A DNA stretch of 63,972 nucleotides, the filler included, from Reticulomyxa filosa (taxonomy: Eukaryota; Protista; Foraminifera): NCBI GenBank assembly GCA_000512085.1. It is 14 parts of 14 records of this genome, joined end to end, with 100 filler letters (N's around TTAATTAATTAA, not from the genome) between each part and the next. Parts side by side here need not be neighbours in the genome. Positions count along the whole stretch, not along the records: positions 30,893 to 37,325 come from ASPP01000110.1; 13 more parts are not named here. One strand, given 5' to 3'. The position numbers and the translations under genes are program-made. The notes beneath the pieces were generated by a model. It had not been told where the DNA came from. It was given only the letters and a program-made list of their open reading frames with translations, and made no database searches. How positions within the stretch are numbered: the first letter of the stretch is position 1; every line of letters begins with the position of its first letter. This document shows positions 464 to 37,325 of this stretch, piece after piece.

Positions 464-3093
464 TGACAAAGACCATAGCCGAGAAGTACCCAGAACAAAG
501 TGGTGACGACAAGATCAAACGATTTCGGGTAGGTGACACTACAAAAGAAAAAGGGGAGTTTGGAAGAAGAGGAGGGGTACTATTAAACATTTGTAAAAAA
601 AAAAAAAAATGACCAGCAAAGAAAACGTGTTCCATTCAAGACATTGGAAAGTTCAACAATCGAAAACTTTTTGGAACGACGACCGAGCGAGTCGGAGTTG
701 TGGGAAAAGAATATTCTACCCTCGCTTCCGCCCTCGGAGCGCAGTTCATTGAAGAATCAGCGCAAACACAACCTACGACGCAAGTTGTCAATGGAAATTC
801 GGCCGACGGTGGAGCAATTGGAAAGACGGGGCATAATTCCAAAGGGCGGGATGCAGAATCCTACGGAGGCAGTGGAGCGAATAAAAAATCGTCGACAAGA
901 GAGCATGTATCAATTGGAAGTAAAGTTTTCGCAGCGTCCGGCAGCGCAGGATCTGATAACCAATGGTATCATGCAGCCACATTTGCAGGAGGAATTGAGT
1001 GAGGCCATTGTGGAGATTGACAGTCGGGACAGTCTGGCCACGCATCCTAGTGTTCGTCCACGCCTATTGTCCAATGAGTCGACAGGCATGCCGCCACAAG
1101 TATGGATGAGGCCTTCACGAGGCAGTCTGGATAGCGGCATCCCATTGCCGATGGAAGACAATCTCTCGCCACGAGCCTCCACGGACGCGGCTATGTTTAG
1201 TAAGAAGTCGGCGGACAACTCTACCGTGAATGGGATCGGTATCATCACCATCATGTCGCCTCCGACGCCTGCGCAAGTCAATGAAGACAACGAGTGCAGC
1301 GACGATGCGCTCGATATCGAAGCCAAGTGGAAGACCCATGTCAAGGTCAAATCCAAGTCGCAGTCGCATTTGCAAACACGGACCACACGTGGCTTGACGG
1401 TGGAGCTGAGGGAAATGATGCAAGAGCAGCTGAATGAGGTCTCGTTCCAAGCCGATACACTGCCTTTCCTCATCTATCAATTGCAAGACACGTTCAAAAA
1501 GTTTTGTGATGAAAAGCACGTCTTGCAAGACGCCGATGGCCCTTTGCTGTTCCAACAATTGCAAGCCATTCGACTTGCACATGAAAATGCCTTGGAAGAT
1601 CTTAAAAAAAAGTCGTGGGATGTCGTGGTCAAGCAAAAGAATAGGTCTCTTTTTCGAGCATTTCTACATTGCATTGATTTATTCGACCTTTGCATACGCA
1701 CAAAAAAACAAACAAACAAACAAAAAACTCTTTCATGTCTCTGCAATTTTATGCTTCATTTGTTACTATGGAAACACTAACGTAACAGATTTAAAGTCCT
1801 GGAAGAAAAGTATTATGAATTGGAAGAGGAAACACAAGAGTACCAACACCGATGTGAAGGGCTGGAACAACGATTGAGGGAGTACGAGATGAACAACAAT
1901 GCCAATGAAATACGACACTCGTCCAATACAAATGACAGCGAAAGTGACGAGTTAAAGAAAAATGGAGAATTTGCCTCGAAGGATCCTGTCTCGGTGTTGA
2001 GCATGCTTAGTGTTCAATTGTCCAATTTATCGTCGACAACAACAATAAAAAATCCTGAGATTGAAAATGTCATACAAAAAATCAAGGCCGAGGTTGAGAC
2101 ATTATCTCTTCGCAGGAAAGACACGCTAAAAAAAAATCAAGTAAGTCTGAGCGACTTGAGAGAGTCGAAACGTGACATTGAGAAATTACGCACTGAAGTG
2201 AAAATGCTCAAAGTCGAAAAACAGGAATTACTTTTAACACACGAAAAAGAAATCCGAAAGTTAAGATCTTCCTTTGAAATTAAATTGAAAGAAAAAAACA
2301 ACACGTGGGTGGATATGAAAAATGTATCCGACGTACGCTTGATTCAAGAAATGAATGAACTCAGAGACGAATACGAACACAAACTAAACGATCAACGCAG
2401 GCAGACCATCGAATTACGAAAAATCATGGACAATGGCATTGACAGAACCAAGGAATTGGAAGGTTTACTGCTTTTTTTTTTTTTCTTCTTCTTTCTTTTG
2501 TTTTTAACATGCGGGATGAACAAAAACAAAGTTCTTCTTTTTTATTTTCATATTTTTTTTAAACTTAATATACATTTTAGACATGAAGAAACAATTCCAA
2601 GAAAAAGATACTATGATCGTCAGATTACAACGGGAATTACACACTTCACAGCAAAAGAATAACGATTTGGAACAGGAAATTGTCCATCTTAAAAATCATC
2701 ACGACAATGAGAAAATGGCACAGAAACAAGCCGAACAAGAGATTGTCGTTTATAATCCCGAATGTGATATTTCACCCGAAATTACGTGGAGGATTAAATA
2801 TGTCAAGCTTTTGCATTGTAAACAAACTTTGGAAAAAAAAGTACTACAACTGTCACAGCAAATTGTTGATTTGTGCGCTGATTGATCAGTTGGCTGTTTT
2901 TTTTTTCGACATAGATTTTTTTCTCATTTCAAATATAACTTTTTTTCTTTTTTTTTTGTGTCCATGTTCTTTGTGTGTAATACCACTAAGTTTTTCTATC
3001 TTTTTTTTTTGGTCAACTTTTTGAGTAGCTGAAGCTAATACAAAGAATCAACAAGAAATTATTCTTTTGCAAAAAATTGCGACAATCAAGTAA
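1..3093 (+). CDS. RPEL-repeat (G-actin-binding) protein with Asn-rich N-terminus and C-terminal coiled coil; multi-exon, 5' end probably outside the window
   Basis: Three RPEL-like motifs at ~659-973 (ENFLERRPSESELWEKNIL; LSMEIRPTVEQLERRGII; EVKFSQRPAAQDLITNGIM). ORFs 1820-2662 and 2583-2885 are E/K/L-rich coiled coil. ORFs are separated by AT-rich GT..AG segments. 3' end approximate. Confidence 0.75.
385..461 (+). repeat. (AAT/AAC)n microsatellite encoding poly-Asn
   Basis: Directly visible trinucleotide run inside ORF 73-612. Confidence 0.95.
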
Positions 3094-30461: not shown

Positions 30462-30910
30462 TGATAAATATATTATATATAATGTTATATATGTACATAT
30501 ACTCCAAAATTTTGTTCATGCATTAAACTTTTTTAAAAAAAAATCAATAATTTTCTTCCAAAATTTTGAATTTAATCATTTAATCATAGATTTTTTTAAA
30601 TTTCAATTATCTTTAATTGCTATGTATATTCTTCGACTAACACAAGCTCGTGGACAAGAATATAAACAAATGCACATGAATCTGTGGCCACTGAAAGAGA
30701 CGACGAACAAAAGAATACAATTGTTTATCTCAAAACTGGCTGACAGAAATCTTTATGAAAAAAACGTTCATGTCCAAATCAAAAAAAAAAAANNNNNNNN
30801 NNNNNNNNNNNNNNNNNNNNNNNNNNNNNNNNNNNNTTAATTAATTAANNNNNNNNNNNNNNNNNNNNNNNNNNNNNNNNNNNNNNNNNNNNAAAAAAAA
30901 AACCAATAAC

Positions 30911-33209
30911 TTAAAAAGAAGGACAAGTAGAGCGGCCGTAAATATTAGAGGAATGAAGATAAGAGGCATTATAAAGGGAGGAAGACGAAGAAGGCAAAGC
31001 GAAAGCACAAGAATAAGAGAGATAGTTTGGAATGGGTGTGCGAGTAACAGAAAGGACATCGGAATGAGTAAATGAAGACGCAGCAGCAACGCCATCAACA
31101 ACAAAGTTATCAAAAAATTGGAAATCGGTGAGATTATCAAACACGTGAAGACCAAAGGCATTGCCATAGGAAGACACAATGTTGTGAACATGAATATCTC
31201 CAAAGAGGACATGTTTAGAATTAATTACACTAATGGCACGAGTGGCAGCGCCTTCATAATGATTTGTGGGAATAGTGGTTTGTGAAGAATAAATAATATG
31301 TGATTGATCACTTTCATCATTGCAAGTGTAATGGCCCATTTCACTCCAATTGTTTAAATATTTGATCGAAACATTGTCCACAAACACGCCATCGACATTG
31401 TCAATACGAAGACCAACAACCCCCTTTGTCGCATGAAACATTACATCGCCATTGCAAATGAGTTTTGAAGAGGCTGTCATTCATCCATATATCACCACAT
31501 ACGTATAAAAAAAGAAAAAGAAAAAAAGGAAAGAATAACATAACTAGGTAATGATGTTCCCTGAGTGACCCATTGAATGAGATCAGAAGAAACAGAGGTT
31601 CCTGCTTTTCCTTTTTCACTGTCGGCATCGCCAAACATGCTCAATGCAATTTGGGCGTCGCTGAGCACATGTCCGCGATAGGTGAGATTTCTCCACGGAA
31701 AATGGCTACTGTACTCGCTGTTCAAAGATTCTCGCCCGACGTCAAAGACAGCAAACATGTTAAAGACATCTCCATAGGGCCCGGTGTTGACAAGCTTGTC
31801 GCTACTTTTGAACGCGCCAAACTCGTGCGTTTTGATATTGAGATCGTGGATTGTAACATTTTCGATTGTCGCTTTTTGCGACCTGCTTTTTGCAGCTCCA
31901 AACCAATTGATTGCAGCTCCTTTCGAATTCAGCACAATTCCATAAATGGCCGATCCATCTGGAAGACCAGGTTGATTCACAAATAAAAGGCAATGCATTT
32001 TTAAACAATTGATGATACGTATCAATTTGATCGTCGTCATTGCGAATGGGATTGTCCTTGTCAGCAATTGCAATGTTTCCAGAAAACAGTTTTTCACATA
32101 CAGCATCCATGGTCAGTTCCAAGTCATCGACGATATCTTCGACACTTTTTGTTTCTTGACGATTGGCAAAATGAACAAGTTGATCTCCATGGCTGTCTCT
32201 CAAATAACGAAAATTGAGCAATCCGAATCGTGCGTTGCTCCAATACGCAGTGACAGGGACATTGACTGCCGATGGACCAATTTCCACATTACGAATGATT
32301 ACATTCGAAAAATGATTCATTTGGATTCCACCAACTTCAAATTCATAAATGTGCAATTCTGACAAGGTCACATTCGTTGCACCGTTGCTATGAATGCCAT
32401 GATGACTACTCCATCCAAGATGTCCATTATGTATCCATATTTTGATACTCCCGATTGAGGACTGAGAAAAGGACCAAAGTGTGCAGGTCCTTGACCCTGA
32501 ATAAATGGAGCACTTCCAATTTCAATGTTTGCGTAAAATCGTTGTTGCACTCGAAATTCCACTGACATTTCAATTTCTTTTCCATTTAAATCAATTTCCA
32601 CCTTTTTTTTTTTTTTTACATACATACATTACGTGGTGCAATGTTGTCATAACTTGCAAAAAAAAAAAAAATTTTTAATAAAAAAATACATCATTTGCTT
32701 CGATTGTAATTGCCGCAAAAAATCCCAATCGAAATGCCCCGGGTACATAATCAGCCCCGTTTTTTTTTTTTATTTGGATGTAATGTATGCAGCTAGATTG
32801 ACTCGTTTTTTTTTTTTTGCACACCTGGATACAAATCGGCCTCACTTTCCAATGGATAATATGCTCCTTCTTCATTTGGGTGATCGACGTTTCTTAATGG
32901 GTTAAATGAAATGTCTTCACATAACTGGTATTTCCCTGACTTTGTTATTCGAACTGTTCCTGTATCAAAATGCTTCTGTTTCAGATAAACTATTCCAGAG
33001 TCCTCATTCACGACTTCACATGCGCTCAATTCAATGAGCACTAAAAAAAAAAACACATTTTTCAAAATTGCAAAATTTAAAAAGGACGAATTGTGTGCAC
33101 CTAAAAAAACAACTTTTTTTTTCATTCAGCCTTTCTTTTGCTGCATTCCCACGTAACTTAAGACTGCGAATACTACAGACCATTTTACATAGTCGAGAAA
33201 TTTGACCAT
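30911..33209 (-). CDS. Secreted protein with probable right-handed beta-helix (pectin-lyase-like) repeats; multi-exon
   Basis: Hydrophobic signal-like start (MVKFLDYVKWSVVFAVL..LIELSAC). Motifs GTVRITKSGKYQLCEDISFNP, FFAAITIEANDV.IDLNG, GRSSHHGIHSN, and repeats such as NVIIRNVEI, ATIENVTIHDL and GVFVDNVSI. One homopolymer frameshift near 31985. Confidence 0.65.
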
Positions 33210-35166
33210 TGGAAAGTAATTTCTGCGTTGTCGTTTAAACAAACAAAAAAAAACTTAGCGAACTGAGGACCTAAAACTCAAAAACACAACTTCTGATGTC
33301 ATAATCAAAATCATTTTTTAAATTATGCTTTTGCCGTGAGTTGCAATGATTTTTTTTTCATTTAATTTATTTTTGACATTGTTTCACAATCAATAAGTTT
33401 GTGGAAAACAAAACATGAAAATTTCTGGTGTTTATAAGTCCATATGATGTATTCTTTGACACGCATTTTTCAGCAAGATAAATATACAGTATGAATTCAA
33501 TAGCTGCATATCACTGTATAAATATGTTTTTTCAAACAATATTGTAACATTATCAACAAATCAAAAGGTGTTTCTTGTTTGCATTCTAAAAAAAATTTGC
33601 CACATTTGAATGGTTAACACAATATCTCAATATACCTTGAGTCAGTACAAATTTATACAAGATGTTTTTAATTTTCATTATTTCATAAATATGTTATTTA
33701 TACTCAAATAAATTTAAACTTAATTTATCGTGTTATGTAATTTACACATACTGCATTTTCTAAGTCATCATACATATTTTAAACGATGCTCATTTGCTGT
33801 GACAGTTTCAGCTGCACTTGCTAAGCAATCGTATGTGATATAGTACTTTACAAAGTTAATGTAGAGAAACTGTTGATTATATTAATACAAAACAAAAAAG
33901 AATTGCTTGAGAATAGAAAATTCATAACGTATAAAGATGAATCAAGTAAAGAAATTTTTGGACAATAATGTAAATTTTCTATTTCAAAATATTCAATACA
34001 TGCTCGTATGGCTGTATAAACGTCTTGCAACATCCAAACAAGACGTCTTGTGTGTGCAATCGTTTTTCGGATTCGTGCTTATTGTGATCCTGATATGATC
34101 AGTTTGTTTATATCAGTATTGTTTCTAGTTTGTATGTTTGTCCGTAGCAATTTTGTTAATTATGTTAATTGTTCATTCAAAAACAAAACTGGAATATTTG
34201 TTTAAAAAGTTATTTATATTTAAAAATGTTGTAAATAAATTTTTTTGGAGTAAAAAAAATTATTAGCCAACTAAAGTGTTACTCGAGTTGTAAAATCGCA
34301 GTTTGTTCGGAGATTGTAGAGAGATGCAAGAAAGAGAGCTCAGCTAAATTAAACGTATAAGAAAATTGAGAATAAAGAGAATGAGTGTTTGATGAGTTGA
34401 GTTGTTACAACTCTGGAGTCAGTTATGGCTCATGTATCACTACAAGATATTCAAGTTTTTTTAATGGTATTTATAAAAAGATGAAACATCAAACAAAAAA
34501 TGTTCAGTTTTTTACGCGATTTTTAGTATAATAAAAAAAGTAGGCAGTAACACAAGGTACTGTCAACAATTTTTTTACATCAATTGTTTGTGATAAGAGA
34601 TAATATTGATGTCTTTACAATTTTCCATCTTTTTACACAATATTTTTTATAATCATTCTAATTTCAATAATAAAAAGGAATGTTAGAAAACTAAACTATT
34701 TCCGATCGTTTTTGTACCTTCCAGCATTTGTCTACTATTTTTTTATGCGATGAGACGATTAAATGATTATTTGAAATCAATGAACTTGCAAAAATAATTA
34801 AAAATATGCTCTTGATCTTTCTGATCTTTTTTACAATTGTGAAAAGTGATTTGTTTTTTTTGCTAGAGTTCACAAATTGGTTGAAAAAAGTTGTTTCTAT
34901 AGTGAAATTTTGCTCGTAAGATCTACTGCAGCAATGTCCATTTTTTAAGAATTTTGATTATGCTAGTGCCAGACGATACTTTCAATAGTATTTGATATTC
35001 AAATATATATTGTGTATAACTACCATTCACTCCGTTTCAAAGTGGAAAAACTTGCTTTTATAAACTAAAGAAAATATTGAATATTAACTTTTTTTTTTAC
35101 ACCAAAGTAGTAAAGCGCAACCACAAAAATTTTTTTTTGCCTTGAGCCTTGTTCTCCTGGTGTGAG

Positions 35167-37325
35167 ATGGCGGAGTTTGAAATTAGAAGCGAAAATAATG
35201 GCTGGTATCAGGTTCGGTTTGTGTTTTTCATTTGTAGTGGCTAGAATATGAGTTTAAAAATGTGTGATAATCAATGTGACCGGTCGACTTGCGAAACAGG
35301 GCTATGTTCACGATTTTAGCCCGAAAGAAAAAAGATTTTACGTCACTTATCCAAATGAGTTTAGATTGATCACAGAGCGCATTTTTCTTTTATTTCCTCT
35401 CTTTCTTCAGTCCATCCCATAGGGCTATACAAGACAAACATCGAGAGCAAACATGATCAAAAAAAAGCAATTACCCAAGCCCTCTTCCCCAACCTTTGTT
35501 TTGTGTGGTTGTTATTATTGCATTGTAAACTTTAAACAACACAAAAAAAAAAAAAAAAGTTGGAAATCTCCTGAATGGAAATCAGGAGAAGATGTTCGGC
35601 CAATCCCAGCCCCATTACAAGCTAATTGGAAACCCCTAATAAACAAAACAATTGAAGTTTTGTTTTTGTCTCTCTTTCATCATCCAACAAAATAAATAAA
35701 ATAAAACAAAATAAAATAAGTGCCAAAGAAAAGCAGTTCCAAAAGATTCACAAAAAGGATGGTTTGTATGCAAAGTAGATAATGTGGTTTCGGAAGTTAT
35801 TCACACCAAAATAAATTTCTTATTTTTTTTTTTTTTTTTTTTGCAAAATACCCCCTTTTTTTTTTTTTAAATAGAAAATAACTTATTTCTTTTAAGGTCT
35901 TTTTGTTTGCATTAATTGTTTTAAGCCAAAAAAAAACAAAAACGAATAGGACACGTATCACGTGTTAGTAAGCGACGCAAAAGGTGGACACAAGAAGTTG
36001 TATCCAGGGCTGCATTGCGTCCGAAAAACCCAAGGTGCAATACACTGTGTTGAAATGACTTGGATTTGCACACTTGAATGAGTCCAAAGGGAGAGGGGGC
36101 AGGAACAGGGGAAAGAGGTGTCAATTGTGTGATGGAGGTGTAAATATCATATACATATGAAGAAAAAAAAAAAAAAAAAAGTATATAAAAATAATCATTA
36201 TTATTATTATTATTATTATTGTGTGTATGTAATGCATTTGATATAATGCTCGATAGGAAACCCTTGACTGAAGAAACAACAGAGCGTAAGATCATAGCAA
36301 TAGACAAGGATCTGGTGGCGTGGGTGACATCAGAACCACCAGAACTTGCCGATATCCGAAAAAAGCAATCTCGTATGTGTGTAATGTATCCTTTTTTTTT
36401 TTATTAAATAACCAATCCCTTTTTTTTTTCCTGTTCAAAGAGAGAGAGAGAATGCAATACAAGGAAATAAACAAATCCAATACAGGTGTAGTTCTACATG
36501 TGGACCCCAAAAAGAAACAAATTGTGATCGTGGGCGAACGTGATGTCTTGAGCAAAGTCCAAGGCTTAATTGATTTGTATTTTCTAAAGCATCGTGACGA
36601 AACCAAACAAGATCAAGCCAAGCCGAGCCAACGAACCCAAACCCAAACCCAAACCCAAACTCCAAACGAAAAAGATCAAGTTTACCATTTAGATACCTTC
36701 AGCTTTAATTGCTACATTTTTTATTTTTTTTTGTTTGTTTTGAGATTAACAAAATAAAGAAATAGTAAAAATGCGCTTTTTCGTGTGTGTAAAAAAAAAA
36801 AAAAATAAATAAATAAATAAAAAAAAAAAGAAAAAGAAAAAAAAGAAAAAGGAAACAGAAGAAGGCAAAGTCGAATTGGAAACAGAGTCAATTCGGTTTC
36901 ATCCATTGCTCACAGGATACATATATGGAAAGCAAAAGGAACACGTGGAAGATGTTCGCAAGAGATTTAACGTGGAAGTGAACGTAAAAGATGGAGTATG
37001 TGAAATAAGTGGGAAAACGCGAGAAGCGGTCAATGCAGCAGTGGAACAACTGTATGTAGTTGCGAAAAAGATAGCATTGAGCAGACCGCAAGTAAAACAT
37101 ATCATTGGAACCAAGGGTGAAGGAATCAAAGCACTGCGACAGCGTTTGCCTAATGTGCGTATTATAACCTTGAAATCATTTCCGGAAACTTTTCAAGCTA
37201 TGAAAGAACAAGCCATTGAAAACATTCGTCGACAACGAAAAAAAGAGGGAGCCACTAGTTATTCTTATTTATTTCTTTATTTACTTTGTTTTTTTTTGAA
37301 TGAATTAAATAACAATAAAATAATT
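35167..37325 (+). CDS. FMR1/FXR-like RNA-binding protein (tandem Agenet, KH0, KH1, KH2), 3' truncated
   Basis: Spliced product: MAEFEIRSENNGWYQ|GYVHDF..FYVTYPNDWKSPEWKSGEDVRPIPAP..TIE|CQRKA..GWFVCKV..|DTYHVLVSDAKRWTQEVVSRAALRPKNPR|KPLTEETTERKIIAIDKDL..VDPKKKQIVIVGE..VQGLIDLYF..LTGYIYGKQKE..CEISGKTREAVNAAVEQL..VKHIIGTKGEGIKAL. It is colinear with the FMRP N-terminal half as I recall it. One extra A is needed at 35979-82. Confidence 0.85.

Follow-up and report, generated by a model that had tools for sequence, protein, structure and literature searches.

A very probable fragile-X family (FMR1/FXR) gene, with introns at human FMR1 positions, in the foraminiferan Reticulomyxa filosa

FMRP is commonly presented as an animal gene product. 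Within the window of DNA analysed here (63,972 nucleotides, filler included), the piece at positions 30,893-37,325 (6433 bases, identical to NCBI contig ASPP01000110.1) comes from the monothalamid foraminiferan Reticulomyxa filosa (Rhizaria) and carries, on the plus strand, a gene that is almost certainly a native foraminiferan member of the fragile-X family (FMR1/FXR). The initial annotation had proposed an intron-containing gene with Agenet-Agenet-KH0-KH1-KH2 architecture at this place, and both the architecture and the introns were recovered: all sequence blocks that it had matched to FMRP are found on the plus strand, in FMRP order, and are joined by GT-AG introns with matching phases. Taken as a whole, the results are likely to be best explained by a native fragile-X gene that is one of at least two copies, has descended vertically and encodes an FMRP-like regulator.

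By three-frame reading combined with a list of splice sites, eight exons and seven introns were defined, the introns being all of the GT-AG type and 64-222 bases long. Their phases are consistent throughout, bar one base inside exon 5, and about 359 codons can be read without an in-frame stop. Most introns are rich in T towards the 5' end and in A towards the 3' end, and a T-rich stretch following exon 8 is, on this resemblance to the 5' halves of most other introns, probably an eighth intron. The contig ends inside the KH2 variable loop, and the rest of KH2 and any C-terminal tail lie beyond the piece. Exons were scored one by one against a profile of nine relatives (A4), to which the profile positions below refer. 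The features are the following.

35167..35211, plus strand: exon 1, with the start codon, beta1-beta2 of Agenet 1 and ionic-lock Glu5 (profile 1-15)
35212..35299, plus strand: intron 1, phase 0, at the same site as human FMR1 intron 1
35300..35358, plus strand: exon 2, middle strands of Agenet 1 (profile 17-35, E 2e-4)
35359..35559, plus strand: intron 2, phase 2, in the codon preceding a conserved Trp, at the same site as human intron 2
35560..35656, plus strand: exon 3, last part of Agenet 1 with DVRP and the ionic-lock Arg, then the linker and the start of Agenet 2 with the ionic-lock Glu (profile 37-67, E 2e-3)
35721..35795, plus strand: exon 4, beta1-beta2 of Agenet 2 (profile 68-92)
35950..36034, plus strand: exon 5, beta3-beta5 of Agenet 2 with ionic-lock Arg and an internal frame shift (profile 104-116)
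35979..35982, plus strand: A4 run at which the frame appears to break by one base, through either an assembly error or a real lesion
36257..36372, plus strand: exon 6, linker followed by the first half of KH0 (profile 118-159, hhalign E 2e-4)
36486..36679, plus strand: exon 7, second half of KH0, which lacks GxxG, and beginning of the KH0-KH1 linker helix (profile 158-217, E 2e-6)
36635..36661, plus strand: ACCCAA hexamer repeat, coding for a Thr-Gln run in the KH0-KH1 linker
36680..36851, plus strand: intron 7, phase 0, orthologous to the paralogue intron 21 residues past the KH0 Phe
36852..37257, plus strand: exon 8, KH1 (GKQK), first half of KH2 (GTKG) and start of the KH2 variable-loop insertion (profile 223-349, E 7e-36; Pfam KH_1 E 3e-12)
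37258..37325, plus strand: probable intron 8, with a GT donor, T-rich and cut by the contig end

The exon order is collinear with profile A4, on which neighbouring exons nearly touch. When 313 six-frame stretches were scored against the profile, the top five were exon 8 (E 3e-36), exon 7 (5e-6), exon 2 (8e-5), exon 3 (1e-3) and exon 6 (0.03). Exons 1, 4 and 5 are individually non-significant and were assigned through their position and phase, and Pfam gave nothing useful on the small exons. The NCBI annotation holds only RFI_00115 at this place, a 182-residue 'hypothetical protein, partial' that includes intron sequence. We rejected this model as incomplete: it begins in intron 6, runs into intron 7 and ends within exon 8.

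Relatives were collected by a phmmer search with the NCBI fragment, which returned ten proteins, and by profile searches, which added more; P0005 among the phmmer matches turned out to be a generic KH protein. The relatives comprise RFI_08736 of R. filosa itself, two proteins of Bolivina argentea (EukProt) and JGI, Logan and other environmental sequences, and seven of them are full length at the N-terminus. Two profile searches returned the close family only and no animal or other protist sequences. Metagenome scans gave no match for exon 8, and a scan with profile A5 one further family member.

The family identity of the gene is visible through full-length relatives only; exon 8 alone and the NCBI fragment (P0001) yield nothing but generic KH matches in PDB, Pfam and the ESM Atlas. 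Searched against PDB, profile A4 had FMR1, FXR1 or FXR2 as its top seven matches (E 1e-21 to 1e-8), followed by PCBP2 (6e-4), and covered FMRP 15-211 (E 1e-21) as well as KH1-KH2 (E 1e-8). FMR1/FXR also came first with the relative P0009 alone and with Bolivina P0004 alone, and a profile of mainly the KH0-KH2 part placed FMR1 2QND first (E 2e-9 versus 1e-4). The full-length relative P0009 was modelled with AlphaFold, reaching a pLDDT (predicted local distance difference test) of 85 with the family alignment and of 32 from the single sequence. Foldseek ranks 1-12 of this model are all FMRP/FXR. It aligns to 4OVA (Agenet1-Agenet2-KH0) over 195 residues with a VIA Z of 18.5, KH0 included, so the KH0 fold is present in the predicted structure of this relative, and to 2QND (KH1-KH2) with a Z of 13.2 and a root-mean-square deviation of 2.1 at model residues 216-414, across the split KH2. 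For the FXR1/FXR2 Tudor structures Z is 14.5-14.9, and in the Atlas feature search FMR1 clusters were at the top (0.90, 0.89, 0.88).

Read along the gene, the tandem Agenet is present in exons 1-5 (profile 1-116; the relatives match Pfam Agenet), KH0 follows directly after Agenet 2 in exons 6-7 and has no GxxG (profile 118-217), and exon 8 encodes KH1 along with half of KH2, which is split by a variable-loop insertion as in the relatives. FMRP is described with such a layout, including a KH2 split by a large insertion, and with GxxG in both human KH1 and KH2 (PMC13669641). In common with human FMR1, FXR1 and FXR2 (4OVA, 4QVZ, 2QND, 3KUF, 3H8Z) are the order Agenet1-Agenet2-KH0-long helix-KH1-KH2 with the large KH2 insertion, a KH0 without GxxG, a disordered tail (in many relatives rich in RGG), the four ionic-lock residues and intron sites 1, 2 and 7. 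The foraminiferan proteins differ from the human ones in their low identity (22-31%), in the lost KH1 GxxG (this gene and eight of nine relatives), in the placement of introns 5 and 6 and in the absence of human introns 8 and 9 from exon 8. In addition, the Agenet 2 pocket is partly lost in this copy, and the host is a single-celled rhizarian without neurons.

Other families with similar parts correspond less well. PCBP, Nova and vigilin have the type I KH fold but no Agenet module, and their scores are far weaker than those of FMR1 KH1-KH2. The plant tandem Agenet readers (AGDP1/ADCP1, AGDP3, AIP1) and the tandem Tudor of UHRF1 share the tandem Agenet/Tudor fold (Z 9-12), but these are chromatin readers and the match is confined to residues 1-122, without KH0 or KH1-KH2. 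The class of plant Agenet chromatin readers was ruled out, since the gene has three KH-type domains after its Agenet pair. A generic Tudor-KH protein that became FMRP-like through convergent domain shuffling would agree with the matches of exon 8 by itself. We regard it as hardly credible, because the similarity is collinear across five domains including the linkers, the best matches in PDB, Foldseek and Atlas are always FMR1/FXR (the queries being relatives and the profile), and the ionic lock and intron sites are held in common with FMR1/FXR.

The inter-Agenet ionic lock of FXR1 and FXR2 is formed in FXR1 by E6, R47, E65 and R112 (PMC2970552). Mapped to FXR numbering by means of the PDB alignments, R49, E67 and R113 occur in each of the seven full-length relatives, and E5 in each of the six whose sequence extends to it. 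The gene studied here has all four residues, encoded in exons 1, 3, 3 and 5. As to the KH loops, the initial annotation had pointed to a degenerate KH1 loop (GKQK) next to an intact one in KH2 (GTKG). Both are seen, but the KH1 loss is typical of the family rather than peculiar to this gene: GxxG occurs in KH1 of just one of nine relatives, the last Gly being lost in the other eight, whereas the KH2 GxxG is intact in eight of nine. The loss of the KH1 GxxG is a variant trait and not a family-defining one. In exon 4, GWF stands in place of the GWW and EPYGWW motif of the full-length relatives (7/7), and the pocket residue equivalent to Tyr96 is Val. The KH0-KH1 linker is 11 residues longer than in the paralogue by virtue of the Thr-Gln run (32 versus 21 residues after the KH0 Phe). 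Judged by these sequence features, namely eroded Agenet 2 motifs, the Val in the pocket and the Thr-Gln linker run, this copy is the less canonical one.

The position of introns provides a line of evidence beyond the protein. Human FMR1 introns lie after c.51, c.104, c.419, c.513, c.630, c.801 and c.880 (PMC8623550, PMC2832695), and for the comparison the numbering of 4OVA is native (checked at R138). Intron 1, of phase 0, separates the counterparts of K17 and A18 in the alignment, which is the site of human intron 1 (after c.51), and intron 2 splits in phase 2 the codon before the conserved Trp, as does human intron 2 (after c.104, within N35). In the paralogue, intron 7 is found 21 residues past the KH0 Phe in phase 0, corresponding to the human distance from F189 to E210 (after c.630). 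In the present gene it is shifted by the Thr-Gln run, yet still lies 16 residues before the KH1 HP motif as in the paralogue. Introns 5 and 6 are at sites differing from human. By a rough binomial estimate, three site matches out of seven would arise by chance with a probability of 3e-5 to 4e-3. Human c.198 and c.270 are presumably matched by intron 3, which follows the ionic-lock Glu, and by intron 4, at a distance of 12 residues from the first Trp. The shared sites support a common descent that includes the gene and is not confined to its protein.

At least two diverged copies of this gene are carried by R. filosa. Exon 8 is nearest to RFI_08736 (47% identity) and is its sister with a support of 88/88 in a tree that covers only exon 8 and its close family. 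RFI_08736 is located on the 33.7-kb contig ASPP01006696.1 and agrees with the present gene in its intron sites around exons 5-8. At this locus (positions 1-2229 of its stretch) we also noted two unannotated upstream exons, 78-159 and 253-359, and a KH2 that is complete with the following helix and has a degenerate loop (GHEA). RGG-rich tails (3-7 RGG) are found in P0016, P0018, P0020, P0011 and P0013; no RGG was found in P0015, P0017 or the annotated RFI_08736. The tails of the group formed by P0009, P0015 and P0017 are apparently without RGG repeats. Another intron-containing genomic member, with an RGG-rich tail, was observed on contig JAANSS010580981.1 of GCA_024449935.1 (positions 1980-3061 of its stretch). 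The third-position GC of the environmental members ranges from 0.17 to 0.80, and therefore they stem from several distant lineages.

Several points weigh against a native, vertically inherited and working fragile-X gene. The fold and the PDB matches belong to the relatives and the profile and not to the joined product of this gene, and the Pfam models KH_9 (KH0) and FXMRP1_C_core match none of nine members, Tudor_FRX1 one of them, weakly. The frame of exon 5 switches at the A4 run 35979-35982 and no RNA or DNA sequencing run is listed, so that an intact protein and its expression are presumed. The functional role rests on analogy with FMRP. Vertical descent is presumed, and the shared introns are also to be expected after a transfer of genomic DNA.

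The frame break raises the question of gene integrity. The interval from the beta3 Tyr to the conserved Arg measures 65 nucleotides, whereas FMRP and five of seven relatives have 22 codons there, which is one base more. Under-calling of homopolymers in the assembly is the likeliest cause, because a base is likewise lacking in the second R. filosa copy, at its exon 5/6 junction, which adjoins an A7 run. As a different explanation, this copy would belong to the family but be a pseudogene in decay, and the functional gene would be RFI_08736 or one absent from the assembly. Besides the break, the eroded Agenet 2 motif, the Thr-Gln expansion of the linker and the fact that no RNA run is listed for R. 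filosa would fit such decay. We consider it unlikely in view of the open codons, the seven GT-AG introns with phases matching but for one base, and the position of the break at an A run, as in the paralogue. Furthermore, identity to the paralogue in exon 8 is 0.56/0.69/0.43 by codon position, a pattern suggestive of purifying selection, and an in-frame acceptor at 35973 could skirt the break at the loss of one strand.

Regarding its origin, we hold it very likely that the native gene descended vertically from the common ancestor of Sar and opisthokonts. The search of the Atlas revealed a cluster named 'Fmr1-b protein' with 54 members and Perkinsozoa as the commonest phylum (feature score 0.85, TM 0.46 over P0009 1-324) and a Chlorophyta-labelled KH cluster (476 residues, TM 0.37 over P0009 15-430). 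Both resemble P0009 over the greater part of its length and thereby speak for an ancient family that was kept patchily; the labels Perkinsozoa and Chlorophyta rest on 3-4 members. An unlabelled Atlas protein of 386 residues may, together with the two clusters, be a further protist member. The much older origin of the family that the initial annotation had brought forward is strongly suggested by the shared introns and these other protist clusters, but is not shown by a tree.

A horizontal transfer of animal genomic DNA into an early foraminiferan, which would be uninformative on the eukaryote ancestor, has to be weighed here. Intron sites would outlast a transfer of DNA, and the family is reported absent from yeast according to the title of a reference in PMC4216185. 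Such a transfer is nevertheless quite improbable: identity to human FMRP/FXR is merely 22-31%, Pfam models built from animals match most members of animal Atlas clusters yet miss these proteins, and the Perkinsozoa- and Chlorophyta-labelled clusters match most of the protein. Far less probable still is an animal contaminant in the R. filosa assembly as the source of the contig, a reading to which the short contig (6.4 kb) and the introns in common with human FMR1 could be taken to point. It is already largely refuted, and the rhizarian source that the initial annotation had thought probable was borne out. The contig is that of R. filosa, the nearest relative is the second copy, with the same exon 5-8 layout on the 33.7-kb contig of the same assembly, and next come Bolivina argentea, with its two members, and environmental sequences. 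The proteins are also divergent from animal models, and the motifs HPLLxG and DxLxxIGR are common to Bolivina and unlike human FMRP where the PDB alignments cover them.

By what is established for FMRP, the product of the native gene would be a cytoplasmic mRNA-binding regulator. In this scheme Agenet1-Agenet2-KH0 would act as a module for protein interaction, KH2 with its intact GxxG as the main RNA contact, aided by the RGG tail in many relatives, and KH1 without GxxG would be mostly structural. The protein may assemble mRNAs into granules, repressing or timing translation. On this analogy, we lean moderately towards an FMRP-like translational role, and a role in transport along reticulopodia, although attractive, is speculation that we regard as doubtful. 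A bolder scenario dates the full FMRP architecture, introns included, to the last common ancestor of Sar and animals, which practically amounts to the last eukaryotic common ancestor, with losses in yeast and other lineages. Foraminifera would have retained and duplicated the gene and would employ it for localized translation in their very large reticulopodial cytoplasm, much as neurons do in dendrites. We consider this scenario rather unlikely.

According to a review, the family arose in the cnidarian-bilaterian ancestor and is absent from organisms that precede the nervous system (PMC4216185). Our literature search found no report of a non-animal FMR1, which is weak evidence with most subscription papers out of reach. 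The searched literature contains no protist member, but the novelty falls a little short of that supposed in the initial annotation, since an Atlas protist cluster already carries the automatic name Fmr1-b. The gene is a real new family member, and the extension of the host range and the intron evidence would be surprising to specialists. New here are introns 1 and 2 at the exact positions and phases of human FMR1, and intron 7 likewise in the second copy. The presence of such a five-domain homologue and its shared introns in foraminifera, with alveolates and green algae as probable further hosts, would push the origin of the family to early eukaryotes, and FMRP would become an ancient RNA regulator that was later taken up by neurons. 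Such distant homologues reveal which residues matter, with the ionic lock, KH0 and the KH2 loop being kept and the KH1 loop not, and single-celled hosts could serve to probe the basic mechanism of FMRP without synapses.

Elsewhere on the contig, at window positions 30911-33125 on the minus strand, one or more intron-containing genes of unknown kind are located, for which NCBI calls products of 422 and 110 residues. A Pfam search of five open reading frames of this region gave no match, and the open reading frame 31802-32371 no viral or phage match. The latter overlaps with 31492-32106 in two frames, and therefore another frame break or intron is suggested there.
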